A stretch of 63,562 nt of DNA, filler included, from Perkinsus chesapeaki ATCC PRA-425 (lineage: Eukaryota > Protista > Perkinsozoa): NCBI GenBank assembly GCA_013115145.1. It is 12 parts of 12 records of this genome, joined end to end, with 100 filler letters (N's around TTAATTAATTAA, not from the genome) between each part and the next. Parts side by side here need not be neighbours in the genome. Positions count along the whole stretch, not along the records: positions 5,342 to 8,798 come from JAAPAO010001407.1; 11 more parts are not named here. One strand, written 5' to 3'. The position numbers and the translations under genes are program-made. Positions 2,480 to 10,040 of the stretch are shown here, piece by piece. Within the stretch, counting starts at the first letter, position 1. Each line of letters opens with the position of its first letter. Under the pieces are notes generated by a model, which was not told the origin of the DNA, searched no databases, and saw only the letters and a program-made list of their open reading frames with translations.

Positions 2480-5241
2480 ATGGGCTTCGTCGATTGGGTT
2501 CTATTCGGCTGGTTGCTCACTTTGGGTCTTCTTGGCCTCACGACATGTGGTGTTGTGATCTACAGTCGTCACTTAGCCATGCCCGGCCGCAACAGCGACA
2601 CTGCCGACGGGAAGCCTTCGTCTTCTAATGGTCCACGCGAACTTATTTTTTATGCGGCGGAAGGGTGCCCTAAAACCCTCCTCCAGCGGGGCTATAGACA
2701 TTTCTTTTTTGGTCGTCTTCTCACTGCACTGTGGGTTTTTGTCATGGTTATATCATTTGTAATGATGGCCACCCTGGCAGTGTGCACTTATTTCCCCGAA
2801 GTTGCCGAAGCACTTGATACTGACTGGAATGGTATCACTGGTGCCTTCATAATTACCTTTTTCATTTTTCACACTATGGCCATCCTCCTCATAGAGCTCT
2901 ATAGCACTATCGTGGTATCTCTCATGTTGCCTTCCTCCCCAGCTAATGCATCTCATCTTATGATTGAGGAAGCCCTTCCAGCAGCCCTCATCGATGATAA
3001 GTTAGTTGGTCCAGGCGATACTGACGAGGACCCCACGCCTGGGCTTGCCAAGCGTTTCCTTGCCAAGTTCAGGCAGATAGTCGAAGCATATCGTCGAACT
3101 AGATGTCGAACTCTTTTGCGTATTGACGATGATCCTATCACCACCGTTCGCACCGTCGAGTACACCTGTGTTCGTTATCGTTACGACTCAACGATCGAGG
3201 CTTTCGCTCCAGCTGCTGAGGGAATGAAGGTCACCCCTGCTCAAGCCAGGCAGCGGCTACTTAATGGTGGTCTTTCTATGGAAGAGTGTAGCAATTTACA
3301 GCGCCTTATCGGCCGTAATGAAATTGGAGTGCAGCTACCGTCAGTGTTTATGTCGTTGGTTGACGAGTTCAGTACAGTTTTTTATGTTATTCAAAGTATG
3401 GGGTGTTGGGTGGATCTTGGTTACAGTCTCTGGAACATCGGTGGTATATGCTTCACTGTGATGCTTGTGACAGGCGCGGTCAAGGCCCTTGTTGTGATAC
3501 GGCCACAGAAGAAAAAGCTTCATGAGCTGGCTCAGCACAAGACCAATGTCAATGTTCTACGAGATGGCCGATGGCAGTCGATCGAATCCACCCAGGTTGT
3601 CATAGGCGACGTGCTTCGTCTTCAAGAGCAACATGAGCTCGTCTGTGATGGTTATGTTATTGATGGCACTGCGGTGCTCAATGAGGCTGCGCTGACCGGA
3701 GAGCCAATGCCAGTTCAGAAAGTGGCCGTTGAGAAATCCTCTACTTTGTGGGATGCGAGGAATATAGTTCACGCAGGTAAGTTATCTCGACTTATCGTTT
3801 ATGTTGTTGATGTTCATTCGTTTTGCTATCCTTTTAAGATTCCCGTTTTTTGATCTAACACGACTGATACATCCGTCAACTGAATCAACACTAGCTTGCG
3901 ATATACCATCTGTCCCTGCCGACGGTCACTGTCACTACTTCCTATCAAGTCTGTCCAATTTGCAGTTCAGCTTCTCCCGATCGAGTGTGTAGCTCAATAT
4001 TATTCCTCTATGCTTAAGCGCGATATCTTTCATCTCACAGAACTTTGTGCCGGCCCGTAAAAGGGACAGCATTTGTGTCACGACAGATGTGCGGTAGGTA
4101 CTCTGTGTGTGAAGTCAAGCGGGTCTTCCGATGACGAAGCTGTTATGATCGTATCAGCCATCGGTGGCCTAACAGCAAAGGGCAAAATGGTTAGAATCGT
4201 CATGTTCCCAGAGCCTGTCAGGTAGCAGGAGCTGATGTTCGCCGTTAGAGCTTCACCTTCTCCTCAGATTCAAGTATCATGACCAGCTACCTTTGGTGTA
4301 CTTGGGACTGTTTCTCTATGCACTTCTGTTATCTGTTGCCTATTTTGTGTTCACCCGTATAGGCAATTGGGTTGTTACAATACTACAGGTTATGGTAGCA
4401 GTTAAGCAATCTATCAATCCAATGTTACCAGTAGCAATGGTAATGGGACAGACTGTAGCTGCTAAACGATTACGTAATCATCATAAGATATTCTGCCTTC
4501 AACCAGAGAGGATACCAGTTGCTGGTAAAATATCAGTTATGGTATTTGATAAGACTGGTACCATTACTAAGGATGGTATGGAACTTGTTGGGGTCCTCCC
4601 TGCGCAAGGCGGCAAGCTCGGCAATCGTCTAGATATGGCATCACCTTCAACTCCCTCAACTTTGGCTGGAACCTTGCTCAGCAAATGTGGTGATACTGAC
4701 GGTCTCACTGAAGAACTTCACCGAGGTCTCGCATGCTGTCACAGTGTGATCCGTTTAAGGGATGGCAGCCTCAGTGGAGACCAGGTTGAGATCGCAATGT
4801 TTAATGCGTCCGGCTGGACCATATCCGACAAAGGTGAGGTCGTTATTACTTCACCGGACGGTTGCACGGAACTCTCCGTTCTTCGCCATATGCATTTCCA
4901 GAGGGAAACGATGACCAGTGGATGTATCGTCCAAACAGGGATTACCTCTGATTGCCACAACAGCCGCAGTTTGACTGTGTTTGTTAAAGGCTCACCTGAA
5001 AGCATAATGAAATGCTGCACCACGGTACCTGATGTGTACATGAAAGCCTGCGAGGAGCTTGCGGCGGAGAATCTTTACGTCTTGGCAATGGCATCGAAGA
5101 ATTTGTCGGTGAAAGTTACAGCTGGTGATTTAACGGATATGAAACGAAGTGATCTCGAGACTGGTCTGAGTTTGGTAGGATTATTATTGTTCAAGAATGA
5201 AGTTAAAAGTGATAGTGCATTAGCAATTAAAATGTTAAAGG
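2480..5241 (+). CDS. P5-type cation-transporting ATPase, multi-exon, 3'-truncated
   Basis: A-domain LNEAALTGEP, phosphorylation motif FDKTGTIT, VKGSPE, LLLFKNEVK. Introns between about 3778 and 4270. Confidence 0.9.
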
Positions 5242-5341
5242 NNNNNNNNNNNNNNNNNNNNNNNNNNNNNNNNNNNNNNNNNNNNTTAATTAATTAANNN
5301 NNNNNNNNNNNNNNNNNNNNNNNNNNNNNNNNNNNNNNNNN
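5242..5341. other. Artificial contig linker (N-run + TTAATTAATTAA + N-run); one of 11
   Basis: The same 100-nt construct recurs at 8799-8898, 10532-10631, 11879-11978, 43819-43918, 50805-50904, 51944-52043, 55313-55412, 56699-56798, 59456-59555 and 61877-61976. The 12-mer places stop codons in all six frames. Confidence 0.97.
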
Positions 5342-5355
5342 CATCTTGGCTCAAG
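5342..5355 (+). other. Spliced-leader exon relic (3' 14 nt), cut by contig edge
   Basis: CATCTTGGCTCAAG equals the 3' end of the Perkinsus SL (ACCGTAGCCATCTTGGCTCAAG). It is followed by ATTAG, not a GT donor. Confidence 0.8.
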
Positions 5356-5407
5356 ATTAGTTGATCTAATCGTTTTCTATAAGAGCTCCCAAAGCTCCCA
5401 ACTCCTT

Positions 5408-6484
5408 ATGTCACCCCCGTCACGTCGTTCATCGGAAGTTAGTGCGCCGCAGATCGACGAAGAAGCCGATAAGTCTTTCGCTGAAGCAATGAGCAGCTTA
5501 GAGGAGATTTTACATCATGAACCAAATAAACGACTTACTACTGAGCGTTGTGCTCTAGGTAATGAAATGCTTTGTACTATTCGTAGGTATATCTGTGATC
5601 TACTTGAAGAGAATCGAGATATTAGAAAACAGCTTATGGAGTCCATCCTGAACTCTAAGACTCAACCCCATGTCTCGTATAGGGACGTGGCTTCTAGAGG
5701 CGTACAGCCTCTTCCAGCTGTGCAAGCTACTCAAGTCTTTACTCCTAATATTAAGAACAAATCGATTATTTTGAGGCCGACAAGTGAAGGAATGGATATC
5801 CAAGGACATGTTTCGGCCCTAAGAGATGCTCTAGATGGGCTCGAGATTGTCCGCATCAAGCCCCGTCAGAGTGGAGTAGAGGTTATTACTAGTCCCTCTA
5901 CACTCGTTGAGGACATTCAGAACAAGATTACTGGTGCTAATTTGCCATTTACTGCTGGCAATGCCCCTAAGCTTCAACCTGAAGTTCTGGTTTTTACTGG
6001 GGATTATTTGGGAAATCCTGAAGATCTCTTCCAGGATATAGTATCCCATAATAATCTGCTAACTCCAGCCAGTTGGCATGTGGTTCGTACTAATACTCGT
6101 TTTACCATTTATCGTATGGACCCTGAACAACGCAAACACCTACTTGCTAGAGGCGGTTGTTTTGTTAAAGGCCAGAAGATTAAATGTAAGGACGTTGTTA
6201 CTATAAGAATTTGCTTTACCTGCGGGAAGGCCCATGCCAACCCAGCGAATTGTAATGTAAAACCAGAAGATAGAGTCTGTGTACGCTGCTGTGGAAAACA
6301 CTCCCTTAAATTGGGAGAATGTCCCATAGAAGGTGTACCAGAAGTGTTGAAGTGTTGTCTATGTGGGGGTGAGGGCCACACCCCTTTTAGAGGAGATAAC
6401 TCTCTTTGCCATAAAACGATAGAATTGAAACAACGTAAGGTTAATATGACAGACTATGGTGATGGCCCCCTCCCCTGTCAGTAG
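5408..6484 (+). CDS. LINE ORF1 (gag-like nucleic-acid-binding protein), intact 358 aa
   Basis: Coiled-coil N-terminus, SYRDVA motif, and knuckles CFTCGKAHANPANC, CVRCCGKHSLKLGEC and CCLCGGEGHTPFRGDNSLC (about 6212-6410). Confidence 0.9.
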   Translation: MSPPSRRSSEVSAPQIDEEADKSFAEAMSSLEEILHHEPNKRLTTERCALGNEMLCTIRRYICDLLEENRDIRKQLMESILNSKTQPHVSYRDVASRGVQPLPAVQATQVFTPNIKNKSIILRPTSEGMDIQGHVSALRDALDGLEIVRIKPRQSGVEVITSPSTLVEDIQNKITGANLPFTAGNAPKLQPEVLVFTGDYLGNPEDLFQDIVSHNNLLTPASWHVVRTNTRFTIYRMDPEQRKHLLARGGCFVKGQKIKCKDVVTIRICFTCGKAHANPANCNVKPEDRVCVRCCGKHSLKLGECPIEGVPEVLKCCLCGGEGHTPFRGDNSLCHKTIELKQRKVNMTDYGDGPLPCQ

Positions 6485-6636
6485 TTTTGGTCCTCTATGA
6501 TGGTTCCTATAATTTGCTTGTAATATGTTCTATAATACNNNNNNNNNNNNNNNNNNNNNNNNNNNNNNNNNNNNNNNNNNNNNNNNNNNNNNNNNNNNNN
6601 NNNNNNNNNNNNNNNNNNNNNNNNNNNNNNNNNNNN

Positions 6637-8798
6637 TTTTACAAATTAATTGTAATCGTTCTAAAGAATGTCTTAATTTAGTTGCTCACATGTATGATCC
6701 GGACTTCATTTTAGTCCAGGAGCCTCCTCAACGATATCATGTTGATAATTTTATGTGTTTTCGATTTTCTAATAACTCGAAATCTTCTATTTATATTAAA
6801 CGCAGTCTGTCTGATCGTTTTGCCTTAATTCCTAGTATTTCTTCTATTGAGGTTACTGCAGTTAGCTCAATTGAGCTTACTCTGATATCGTTTTATATTT
6901 CGCCAAGCTCCTCAGACATAGGATCTTTATGGCGTCTAAGTGAGAAGCTATTGCAAGAGGATAAGGTTATTATGGCTGGTGACTGTAATGGCTATCATAT
7001 GGATTGGGGTATCTTGTACCCGGATAGAAGAAATGATATAGCTTTTAATATTGGTAAACAAGTCTCTGAATTCACTAAGTTATGTCTCTTGGAATGTATT
7101 AATAATAATTCAGTTTTATTACCAACTTATGCGCATGCAGATGGCATACGCAAATCTATTGTTGATGTGACTTTTCGTGGCTCTGGTCTATTTACCTCGG
7201 ATTGGATGGTACGTTTGGATGACAGCCTTAGTGACCATAAGGCCATTACTTTCTCTGTTAAACCCTATGATGATATCTTGGTTGGAAATGATGATAACGA
7301 CAATGCTTCGAATTACAGCTATTTCAAGACCAATTGGAAGGATTATACCGATTATCTAAAGTTGCACTCTGAAGAATTGAAACATGAAGAAATATTATGT
7401 TATGAGGAGTTGTTGGAAAGAGAATCGACTCTAATTTCGGTATTACAGAGAGCTATCTCCTTTTCTACACCGGTAAAGAAGTCTAAAACACTCACTCGAA
7501 GGAATACTTGGTGGGATCAAGAATGTCGGAAGGCTCGCAGTGATCTTAAGAGAGCTGAGCGAGTGGTTGGTCGGCAAGGTGTCGAGTATAAAGAACTCAG
7601 AAGTGCCTATAAAGCTCTTATTGCCAGAAAGAAGGCAGCTAGCTTCGAGGACTTTGCCAATAAGTTGGAAAATGATAAGCACTATTTCAAAAAAGTTAAA
7701 TCTCCGACTAAGTTCGGAGAATCGCTTTTGTGTGGTGATGTCTCTCCGGAGGAGACAGCCGAGAAGCTAGCGGATGCTTACTTGGGTCCGAGGAGAAATG
7801 ATGATGTTATGGTCACCGGAACGCCAGTTCAATTACCCTATCCCTTAGCTGACCTTCAGAATTTTGAAAAGGTTGCTATTACACCTGAGGATGTCTTGGT
7901 GGCTCTCACCTCAAGAAGGAAGAATTGGAATAAGTGTGGTGGTATTGATGGCCTTAGGTGGAAACACTTAGCTATGGTCCCTAAATCGATTACTGAAGAG
8001 CTCTCTCGTATAATCTCAGCTAGCATTAATTTTGGTAAGGTACCGCCATCTTGGAAGCATTCAAATGTGAAATTTATTCCTAAGGGCCGAAACGCCGGCC
8101 AACTTAATGGTTATCGGCCGGTATCATTAACTGTGGTTCTATGCAAGCTGGCAGAGGCCTGCATACTTGATAAACTGCATGCTGTAGAAGATGAGCTACT
8201 CCTATCAGAGTGTATGTACGGGTACCTACCAAATAGAAGTACTACTAAACTGGTTGGTAAAATCAAGAATAATATAGGCCGAAAGGGCCCATGGGGTGTT
8301 ATTGCTCTAGATTGCTCCAATGCTTTTGGAGAAATCACCCACCAGCAAGTTCTAAAATCATTAACTGAGCACCATGTTAATGGATATCTTATTAATTGGA
8401 TTTCCTCTTGGCTAAGCACACGGACTAATGAAACTAATTTCCTTGGAGTTAACCTTAGAAGATACGCGCCTGAGGGAAAGGGCACGCCTCAAGGAGCTAT
8501 TTTGAGTCCCTTCTTGTTCAACCTAACCTGTTTTGATGTCTTGGTCAAGCTTCAACACAGACTGAAACTTGAACTCCGAAACCATACTGTTGAAATATTA
8601 TCTTATGCAGACGATAGTTTCTTGACTATTAATTTTGATGCTCGTGTGTCTACAGAAACGATGGATGGTCTTATCTCCAAATGTATTGAACTTTCACAAG
8701 AAGCTATGATGGTACTTGGTCTACACATATCGGTTGAAAAGACTGCAGTCTTGGTGAACTATAAATCTACCCTATATCAAGAAGAGATTATGACAGTT
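6637..8798 (+). CDS. LINE ORF2 (AP endonuclease + reverse transcriptase), start lies in the N gap
   Basis: APE motifs LQINCNRS, LVQEP, AGDCNGYH, SIVDVTF and SDHKAI. RT motifs YRPVSL, PQGAILSPFLFN and YADD. No stop codons over about 720 codons. Confidence 0.95.
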
Positions 8799-9289: not shown

Positions 9290-10040
9290 TCTACATCTTT
9301 TTCATTCAATTGACTGGTAACAGTTTGCTTCAAACAAGCCAACTCATCCAGAATCTCCGATGCAGATTGTTGTCTCTTCTGAGATGCACTTAGCAGTGTA
9401 TCATACTAACCGTTTAATAACCTCCAATTTAGCAATTTCCTTTTCCAAGTCGGATATCCGACTCCTGGCGGCAGTTAGGGCCTTGTCATCAGCTTCTTTT
9501 GTGTCCTTCATAGAGTTTAATTCTTTCTGAATCTCTAAAGTAGACAGCTTTTCCTTCTGAAATGAAAAATACATATTTGACTGCACACAGCTAGAGCGAC
9601 AGAATCGTGCCTCCAATCCAGCAACTTCCTTTTCCAAGTCGGATATCCGACTCCTGGCGGCAGTTAGGGCCTTGTCATCAGCTTCTTTTGTGTCCTTCAT
9701 NNNNNNNNNNNNNNNNNNNNNNNNNNNNNNNNNNNNNNNNNNNNNNNNNNNNNNNNNNNNNNNNNNNNNNNNNNNNNNNNNNNNNNNNNNNNNNNNCGTG
9801 CCTCCAATCCAGCAACTTCCTTTTCCAAGTCGGATATCCGACTCCTGGCGGCAGTTAGGGCCTTGTCATCAACTTCTTTTGTGCCCTTCATTAAGTTTAA
9901 TTCTTTCTGAATCTCTAAAGTAGACAGCTTTTCTTTCTGAAATGAAAAATACATATCTGACTGCACACAGCTAGGGCGACAGAATCGTGCCTCCAATTCA
10001 GCAACTTCCTTTTCCAAGTCGGATATCCTACTGCTTGCAA
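9290..10040 (-). CDS. Coiled-coil repeat protein, partial multi-exon
   Basis: Repeated 45-aa exon KEKLSTLEIQKELNSMKDTKEADDKALTAARSRISDLEKEVAGLE. After a GT-AG intron it continues as KRQQSASEILDELACLKQ. Confidence 0.65.
9421..10020. repeat. 189-bp tandem repeat (135-nt exon + 54-nt putative GC-AG intron), at least 3 copies, interrupted by an N gap
   Basis: The anchor TTTTCCAAGT occurs at 9441, 9630, 9821 and 10010, 189 bp apart on each side of the gap. Confidence 0.9.

Follow-up and report, generated by a model that had tools for sequence, protein, structure and literature searches.

Why does a retrotransposon of Perkinsus chesapeaki, a parasite of oysters and clams, begin with the final letters of its host's spliced leader (SL)? 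The question is raised by positions 5342-8798 (3457 nt) of a 63,562-nt stretch of P. chesapeaki DNA, hereafter the window; this piece is the entire contig JAAPAO010001407.1 of assembly GCA_013115145.1. Judged by its sequence, it holds a full-length long interspersed nuclear element (LINE) of the apurinic/apyrimidinic (AP) endonuclease (APE) type, with two open reading frames (ORF1 and ORF2), that belongs to a Perkinsus-wide group of families. Comparison with eight relatives leads us to consider it likely that the element transposes by using its own mature, SL trans-spliced mRNA as template, and such mRNA has probably served in this way recurrently. The piece is organized as follows.

5342-5355, plus strand: SL tail, an exact match to positions 9-22 of the L-type Perkinsus SL; holds the first base of the element, the point at which independent assemblies branch
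5356-5407, plus strand: 5′ untranslated region (UTR) leader, 52 nt; begins ATTAG-TTGATCT, with TAG/TTG as a candidate second trans-splice acceptor
5408-6484, plus strand: ORF1, 358 amino acids, intact; N-terminal long helix/coiled coil with LEENR motif, putative RRM-like core and three CCHC knuckles
6485-6524, plus strand: spacer of 40 nt from the ORF1 stop to the ORF2 ATG
6525-8798, plus strand: ORF2, from the ATG at 6525 (MFYN[T/I]LQINCN...), open to the contig end
about 6879-7247, plus strand: APE domain in ORF2 (Pfam Exo_endo_phos_2, E 4e-12)
about 8079-8756, plus strand: reverse transcriptase (RT) domain in ORF2 (Pfam RVT_1, E 3e-28)
6539-6636, no strand: spurious assembly gap, of true length zero, with one redundant flanking base

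The first 14 bases of the piece, CATCTTGGCTCAAG at 5342-5355, are identical to positions 9-22 of PmaSL1, the 22-nt L-type SL ACCGTAGCCATCTTGGCTCAAG (sequence taken from PMC3101222). They form the sole match within the window, where 0.03 matches would be expected by chance with up to 2 mismatches tolerated. The tail closes with ...CTCAAG at the 3′ end of the SL exon and is followed by ATTAG without any SL intron; the base directly 3′ of it is A, where an SL RNA gene would have GT. An initial annotation of this DNA had described the SL opening, the A in place of a GT donor and an ORF1 ATG 52 nt further on, followed by an intact CCHC ORF1 and an APE-RT ORF2. The positions hold, and the reading of the ORFs together with the Pfam matches bears out the coding organization.

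The contig edge at 5342 is a real branch point rather than a chimaera. Independent contigs of 4890 nt, from four runs and two studies, terminate at exactly this position, which answers the concern of the initial annotation that the end might be chimaeric or derived from contaminating cDNA. A further 28-39 nt of upstream DNA is reached by two short contigs, of 58-60 nt and 69 nt, that overlap the main contig over 5342-5371; in three of the four runs, their depths sum to roughly the depth of the main contig. The 30-mer from 5342 thus has two different predecessors and so stands in two genomic contexts, belonging either to two copies or to diverged alleles. These contexts would differ up to the SL tail and coincide from its first base onward, and the short upstream reach of both branches fits repeated flanks. 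The same 4890-nt contigs reach 1532 nt past 8798 and connect 6537/6538 straight to 6637/6638 with no letters between. Removing the 98 N and one flanking base drops 99 positions, so the frame of ORF2 is kept; at the joint, a C/T difference between two samples makes ORF2 codon 5 Thr or Ile.

With this correction the window element is probably an intact LINE, as read from its sequence. ORF1 matches no Pfam family, in the window or in the relatives scanned. Its three CCHC-type knuckles are kept in 8 homologues, and a structure model (mean pLDDT 71) shows the long N-terminal helix and a double β-α-β core with a weak tandem-RRM match, tentatively suggesting that the central core is RRM-like. RNase H is also present in the full-length ORF2s of relatives.

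An exhaustive profile-free search with ORF1 found 25 relatives, and all those named belong to Perkinsus; their loci were then fetched (99.6 kb of Perkinsus DNA). Neither an exact-product look-up nor a word-indexed search with ORF1 gave a match, because ORF1 is not annotated as such. We compared eight related elements from P. olseni, P. marinus and P. chesapeaki, mostly one copy per family. Every one of the eight carries an SL 3′ tail of 4-14 nt that ends at the last G of the SL exon and directly precedes a homologous leader, 26-52 nt upstream of the ORF1 ATG.

L003 (identical to L004:406-5770), P. olseni: tail CATCTTGGCTCAAG at 419-432; leader ATCTTAGTTGATCT..., ORF1 ATG 51 nt later
L009, P. 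marinus: tail TTGGCTCAAG; leader start ATTTAGTTGG
L011/L012, P. olseni: tail TTGGCTCAAG; leader start GTAGTTGAATC
L008, P. marinus: tail CTCAAG; leader start GTAGTTGG
L005, P. olseni: tail CTCAAG; leader start GTAGTTGA
L006, P. chesapeaki: tail TCTGGCTCAAG (S-type); leader start TTGTTTATT
L007, P. chesapeaki: tail CAAG; leader start TTGTTTTATT
L010, P. chesapeaki: tail CAAG; leader start TTTGTTTTATT

The closest relative of the window element is L003 (ORF1 61-64% and ORF2 about 48% identical), in which the DNA upstream of the tail reads ...CACAATGTG, with ACAATGTG where the SL has ACCGTAGC. Between the window and this P. olseni element the leader is 87% identical, as against 68% for ORF1 DNA. 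The more distant families share only 24-29% identity in ORF1 and about 30% in ORF2 with the window, and the SL tail is letter-perfect against the host SL even where leaders and proteins have strongly diverged. The 10-mer TTGGCTCAAG occurs 8 times in the fetched DNA against 0.19 expected, with seven of the eight occurrences at tail-leader junctions; another contig, L013, opens precisely at the TTGGCTCAAG of an L011-type element. The eighth, at L007:6020-6029, falls within ORF2 sequence of a degenerate element rather than at a 5′ junction and is probably due to chance.

The flanks of the relatives indicate how these letters arrived. Evidence from target-site duplications (TSDs), 3′ tails and flanks comes from the relatives throughout; the window element's own flanks lie outside its contig. 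In L011 one copy of an 11-nt TSD, ACTACCACCAG, abuts the SL tail on its upstream side (4515-4525) and the other abuts the 3′ end of the element (9477-9487); past the latter, the host's 33-nt repeat resumes in register. L010 is likewise bracketed by a TSD, CTACGACCACA. Because the duplication brackets the SL tail together with the element, the SL letters belong to the inserted DNA. Upstream of L003 and L005-L011 lie, for the most part, Thr-codon-like ACTACC tandem repeats or ACTAC/CAA-rich simple repeats, and neither the first 8 nt of the SL nor an SL gene is present upstream in any of the eight relatives. The initial annotation had reasoned that an SL preceded by heterogeneous upstream DNA in other copies would point to retroposition of a trans-spliced RNA, and that full-length copies devoid of the SL would speak against it; the eight tails, their varied non-SL flanks and the duplications of L010 and L011 all agree with the former. 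ACCGTAG repeats upstream of L005 were considered as SL heads and rejected, since a TACTACCGTAG tandem repeat, the usual type of target, explains them more simply.

At the other end, the relatives finish in a conserved stem-loop (GTCTGAC...GGCGTCGGAC) and a (CAA)n tail, replaced by (CAC)n in L011; the TSD comes next, with no GT... of an SL intron. The stem-loop folds with z-scores of -2.8 to -4.9, and its upper stem varies in sequence among elements with pairing kept; it is a likely recognition site for the element's RT. Duplications are about 11 nt long. All insertions, the 5′-truncated copy L001 among them, lie in ACTACC/CAA-type tandem repeats, and several are sense-oriented in open Thr/Ser-rich reading frames, as exemplified by the ORF at L011 3000-4565 and by L010, whose gene model joins the repeat to ORF1. 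A target specific for such repeats, matching the (CAA)n tail, is suggested by this arrangement.

L010:5925-6010; L011:9405-9476; L001:3835-3913; L004:5650-5770: 3′ stem-loop sites
L008:1-235; L009:7013-7099; L010:1-1026 and 6011-6408; L011:4400-4525 and 9477-9600; L001:1-212 and 3914-4100; L005:1340-1405; L007:3960-4170: flanks of ACTACC/CAA-type repeats

We then asked whether the SL was captured once or many times. In an RT phylogeny, a comparison that the initial annotation had proposed, the window element clusters with L003 and L001, and L006 pairs with L009 (approximate likelihood-ratio test (aLRT) 100; ORF2 51% and ORF1 65% identical). The leaders of this pair are homologous from TTG onward, with 79% mean column identity over the aligned stretch, and the SL is joined to them 6 nt apart: L009 has an L-type tail followed by ATTTAG and TTG, and L006 has an S-type tail followed by TTG. 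Each junction falls directly after an AG, the second right after TTTAG. Across the elements there are two leader classes, SL+(A/G)T..TAG+TTG and SL+TTG, and the short class is polyphyletic in the RT tree, comprising L006 and a separate branch of L007 and L010. From these alignments, the simplest reading of L006 and L009 would be repeated trans-splicing to alternative acceptors, each event followed by retrotransposition. The suggestion in the initial annotation that a copy may be re-spliced at the terminal AG of its SL or at the ATTAG downstream thereby gains indirect backing from the two leader classes.

These observations can be assembled into a cycle. Transcription of a genomic copy would start the cycle, driven at least in part by read-through from the surrounding host gene, as we infer from the several copies that are sense-oriented inside Thr-rich coding repeats. 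The SL would be trans-spliced onto an acceptor AG at the 5′ end of the element, either that of the relic's own ...CAAG or that of a TAG a few bases downstream, and the SL-capped mRNA would be translated and then undergo target-primed reverse transcription at ACTACC/CAA (ACN-type) repeats able to pair with (CAA)n. Synthesis of the cDNA, or its 5′ joining, would end within the SL, in nine elements at most 14 nt from the SL 3′ end, with the heavy modification of the SL 5′ half as a possible cause. The SL tail on each new copy would restore the acceptor for the following round. Central to the proposal, which the initial annotation had already put forward in outline, are the SL tails, the non-SL flanks and the enclosure of the tail by a TSD, and all three support it. 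One element of that outline needs revision: the trans-spliced template is supported, but reverse transcription does not run through the whole leader, the DNA copy having 14 of 22 SL letters.

The ceiling of 14 letters is shared, as SL positions 1-8 are retained in none of the nine elements (the window element and its eight relatives). Among more than 31,000 P. marinus 5′ expressed sequence tags the longest SL stretch was 13 nt, which the authors blamed on 5′ modifications hindering reverse transcriptase (PMC2868825), and in the dinoflagellate Amphidinium the SL carries heavy modification, with m1A (1-methyladenosine) and 2′-O-methyl groups included (10.1101/2024.02.20.581179). It is plausible that the LINE RT stops in the modified half of the SL and that this sets the 14-nt limit. 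We noted that primers in Table 1 of PMC3101222, PmaSL-L1-like (CCATCTTGGCTCAAGATCTTAGTG; ...CTCAAGATCTTAGTG) and S-like (...CTCAAGTGTTGTATTTTT...ATG), resemble both leader classes. By sequence resemblance, some of the more than 100 unexplained SL-like loci of Zhang et al. may be LINE 5′ ends.

Several points weigh against a trans-spliced template. Intron-less and seemingly full-length SL copies in P. marinus, reported without explanation by Zhang et al. (PMC3101222), mean that an RT stop at position 8/9 is neither absolute nor universal. The only runs labelled as RNA for P. chesapeaki held none of the sampled words, so that trans-splicing of the element is inferred rather than seen, and the window element's upstream flank and 3′ end lie outside its contig, the anatomy being seen in relatives. 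L005 (1415-1426) and L006 (81-98), distant elements of different species, share CCGGCC just upstream of the tail (CCGGCCCTCAAG and CCGGCCCTCTGGCTCAAG); either coincidence or a longer relic left by an SL variant as yet undescribed could account for this. The difference between L006 and L009 could stem from one 6-nt and one 1-nt deletion during their considerable divergence. Finally, the same 14 nt open two elements that share only about 48% identity in ORF2, and this is also compatible with an inherited, fixed 5′ end set by an internal promoter.

This last point leads to the alternative that survives best, although we regard it as unlikely: a single ancient SL capture, after which the tail became a vertically inherited part of the 5′ UTR, with an internal promoter at its first base and with tail lengths produced by truncation or erosion. 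Many LINEs rely on an internal promoter in the 5′ UTR, and such a promoter would predict the conservation of the whole leader beyond that of ORF1 DNA that is seen between the window and L003, as well as their common 14-nt start. Erosion from one ancestor does not, however, readily accommodate a tail that still matches the host SL letter for letter in families with ORF1 identities of 24-29% and diverged leaders. It is also at odds with the L-type tail of L009 and the S-type tail of L006 at different junction points, each after an AG, and with the polyphyly of the SL+TTG class.

A switch of template could also join the two sequences, if the LINE RT, on reaching the 5′ end of an LINE RNA that is unspliced, jumped to a free SL exon or an SL-bearing RNA. 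LINE-1 does form chimaeras with small RNAs, as in the case of U6/L1 (10.1101/2025.02.02.635956), and partial copying of a second template would account for variable tail lengths. Such a jump would nevertheless be expected to land at the 3′ end of the new template, that is, at the end of the SL RNA intron or the poly(A) of an mRNA, and not at the CAAG of the exon; a free SL exon exists only within the spliceosome; and a jump has no need of junctions placed right after acceptor-like AG sites in the leader. We consider this route very unlikely.

Under the alternative named in the initial annotation, the SL letters would be target DNA, belonging to the insertion site of an APE LINE specific for the exon/intron border of SL RNA genes or SL-exon arrays; we reject it as extremely improbable. 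Non-LTR elements specific for SL genes do exist in trypanosomatids and nematodes, the window element's own flank lies beyond its contig, and GTAG, with which the P. marinus SL intron begins, follows CAAG in L005, L008 and L011. In these three elements, however, the homologous leader continues after the GTAG. Upstream of all eight relatives stand ACTACC-type repeats where SL positions 1-8 or an SL gene would be expected, the SL tail of L011 is inside the TSD, and the 3′ flanks return to host repeat without an SL intron. A multi-copy SL gene upstream would, we reason, also place the branch about 30 nt before 5356, near 5326, and not at 5342, where it is seen.

An artefact or chance match (contaminating cDNA, a chimaeric contig end or a random 14-mer) has a negligible probability, for although the match sits at the end of a contig with a false gap, the same sequence and end were assembled independently from the runs of two studies, an exact copy of the 14-mer, flanked by 418-823 nt, lies in a P. 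olseni genomic contig, relatives are embedded in genomic contigs of 65-68 kb, and the chance expectation is far below 1.

Among known systems, SLACS, CZAR and CRE1/2 of trypanosomatids and NeSL-1 of nematodes are non-LTR elements that, like this one, are physically tied to SL sequence. They differ in having a restriction-like endonuclease and in inserting into SL RNA genes, whose DNA therefore borders them at either end. The window element instead has an AP-type endonuclease N-terminal to the RT and no C-terminal restriction-like endonuclease, a distinction drawn in the initial annotation and confirmed by the Exo_endo_phos_2 match, and its relatives have ACTACC/CAA-type repeats on both sides, TSDs of about 11 nt and SL letters within the inserted cDNA. 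A parallel in target choice is offered by repeat-targeting LINEs of the stringent type, which carry a 3′ stem-loop and a short-repeat tail and insert into matching simple repeats. The Perkinsus elements share with these tail-bearing LINEs the 3′ stem-loop before (CAA)n, insertion at ACN-type repeats, short TSDs and a 5′-truncated copy (L001). We know of no stringent LINE with a host spliced leader.

A precedent for the SL footprint lies in host genes. SL relics are a mark of retrocopies in dinoflagellates, and P. marinus also has them (PMC3101222, PMC12014239). These retrogenes likewise have a partial SL upstream of coding sequence, ending at the exon boundary with no SL intron, and they are explained by reverse transcription of trans-spliced mRNA, with re-trans-splicing possible at an AG in or near the relic (Slamovits & Keeling 2008; PMC12014239; PMC5585692; PMC3101222). 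In the present case the tagged sequence is a retrotransposon, in several families and three species, rather than a by-product host gene. Its tail is at most 14 nt (positions 9-22), as against a usual 15-nt relic preceded by a new SL, and tail and leader act together as the element's standard 5′ terminus. Hydra provides a parallel at the level of RNA, where about 30% of transposon Iso-Seq reads bear the host SL (PMC12220107); transposon RNAs can thus exploit host trans-splicing, but no copying of the SL back into genomic 5′ ends is reported there, whereas the Perkinsus case is known here from its DNA footprint alone. A full-text search of the available literature returned no description of LINEs with an SL tail as their genomic 5′ end.

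Since 2008, SL relics before host genes have been taken to prove that mRNA is massively retroposed in dinoflagellates and related lineages, while the source of the responsible RT is still a guess. A LINE group with the same footprint on itself is a concrete candidate for that engine. The footprint implies that LINE mRNA passes through the host trans-splicing pathway, and a retrotransposon that lands in transcribed DNA and receives a trans-spliced cap could dispense with a promoter of its own; the tail lengths may record where the RT halts on a modified SL. Taken further, Perkinsus LINEs would be promoter-less and SL-dependent, inserting in sense orientation into transcribed Thr-codon repeats, being excised by trans-splicing at a self-recreated acceptor and having their tails reset to at most 14 nt by the RT stop, and the same machinery would make the SL-relic retrogenes of Perkinsus and dinoflagellates. 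We offer this larger scheme tentatively, as a possibility that is doubtful as a whole. P. marinus is transfectable, which makes the model testable.

The 14-nt start, the end in a stem-loop and (CAA)n and the ACTACC target also enable clean annotation of these elements, which are now mis-modelled as spliced host genes in Perkinsus assemblies. At the window, the deposited model FOL47_001680 (P0001) wrongly joins ORF1 residues 61-282 to ORF2 by splicing. Across the window, L003, L010 and L007, gene models contain invented introns that connect ORF1 with ORF2 or with a host Thr-rich repeat, and the Perkinsus LINEs studied here are annotated as hypothetical host proteins.

The 25-mer of SL and leader had 0 matches in a prokaryote genome collection, which holds bacteria and archaea only and is hence uninformative. 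A metagenome pattern, TTGGCTCAAG-RT-N0-3-TAGTTGRWT, gave 20 matches, about the number expected by chance, with no ORF1 or ORF2 homology nearby, and these were rejected as chance. In P. olseni, the ORF2 of L003/L004 (L003:1558-5200) lies in three overlapping frames separated by frameshifts and is probably dead, unlike the open ORFs of the window element, and a divergent 5′-truncated LINE fragment occupies L011:84-1115, 3.4 kb upstream of the full-length element.

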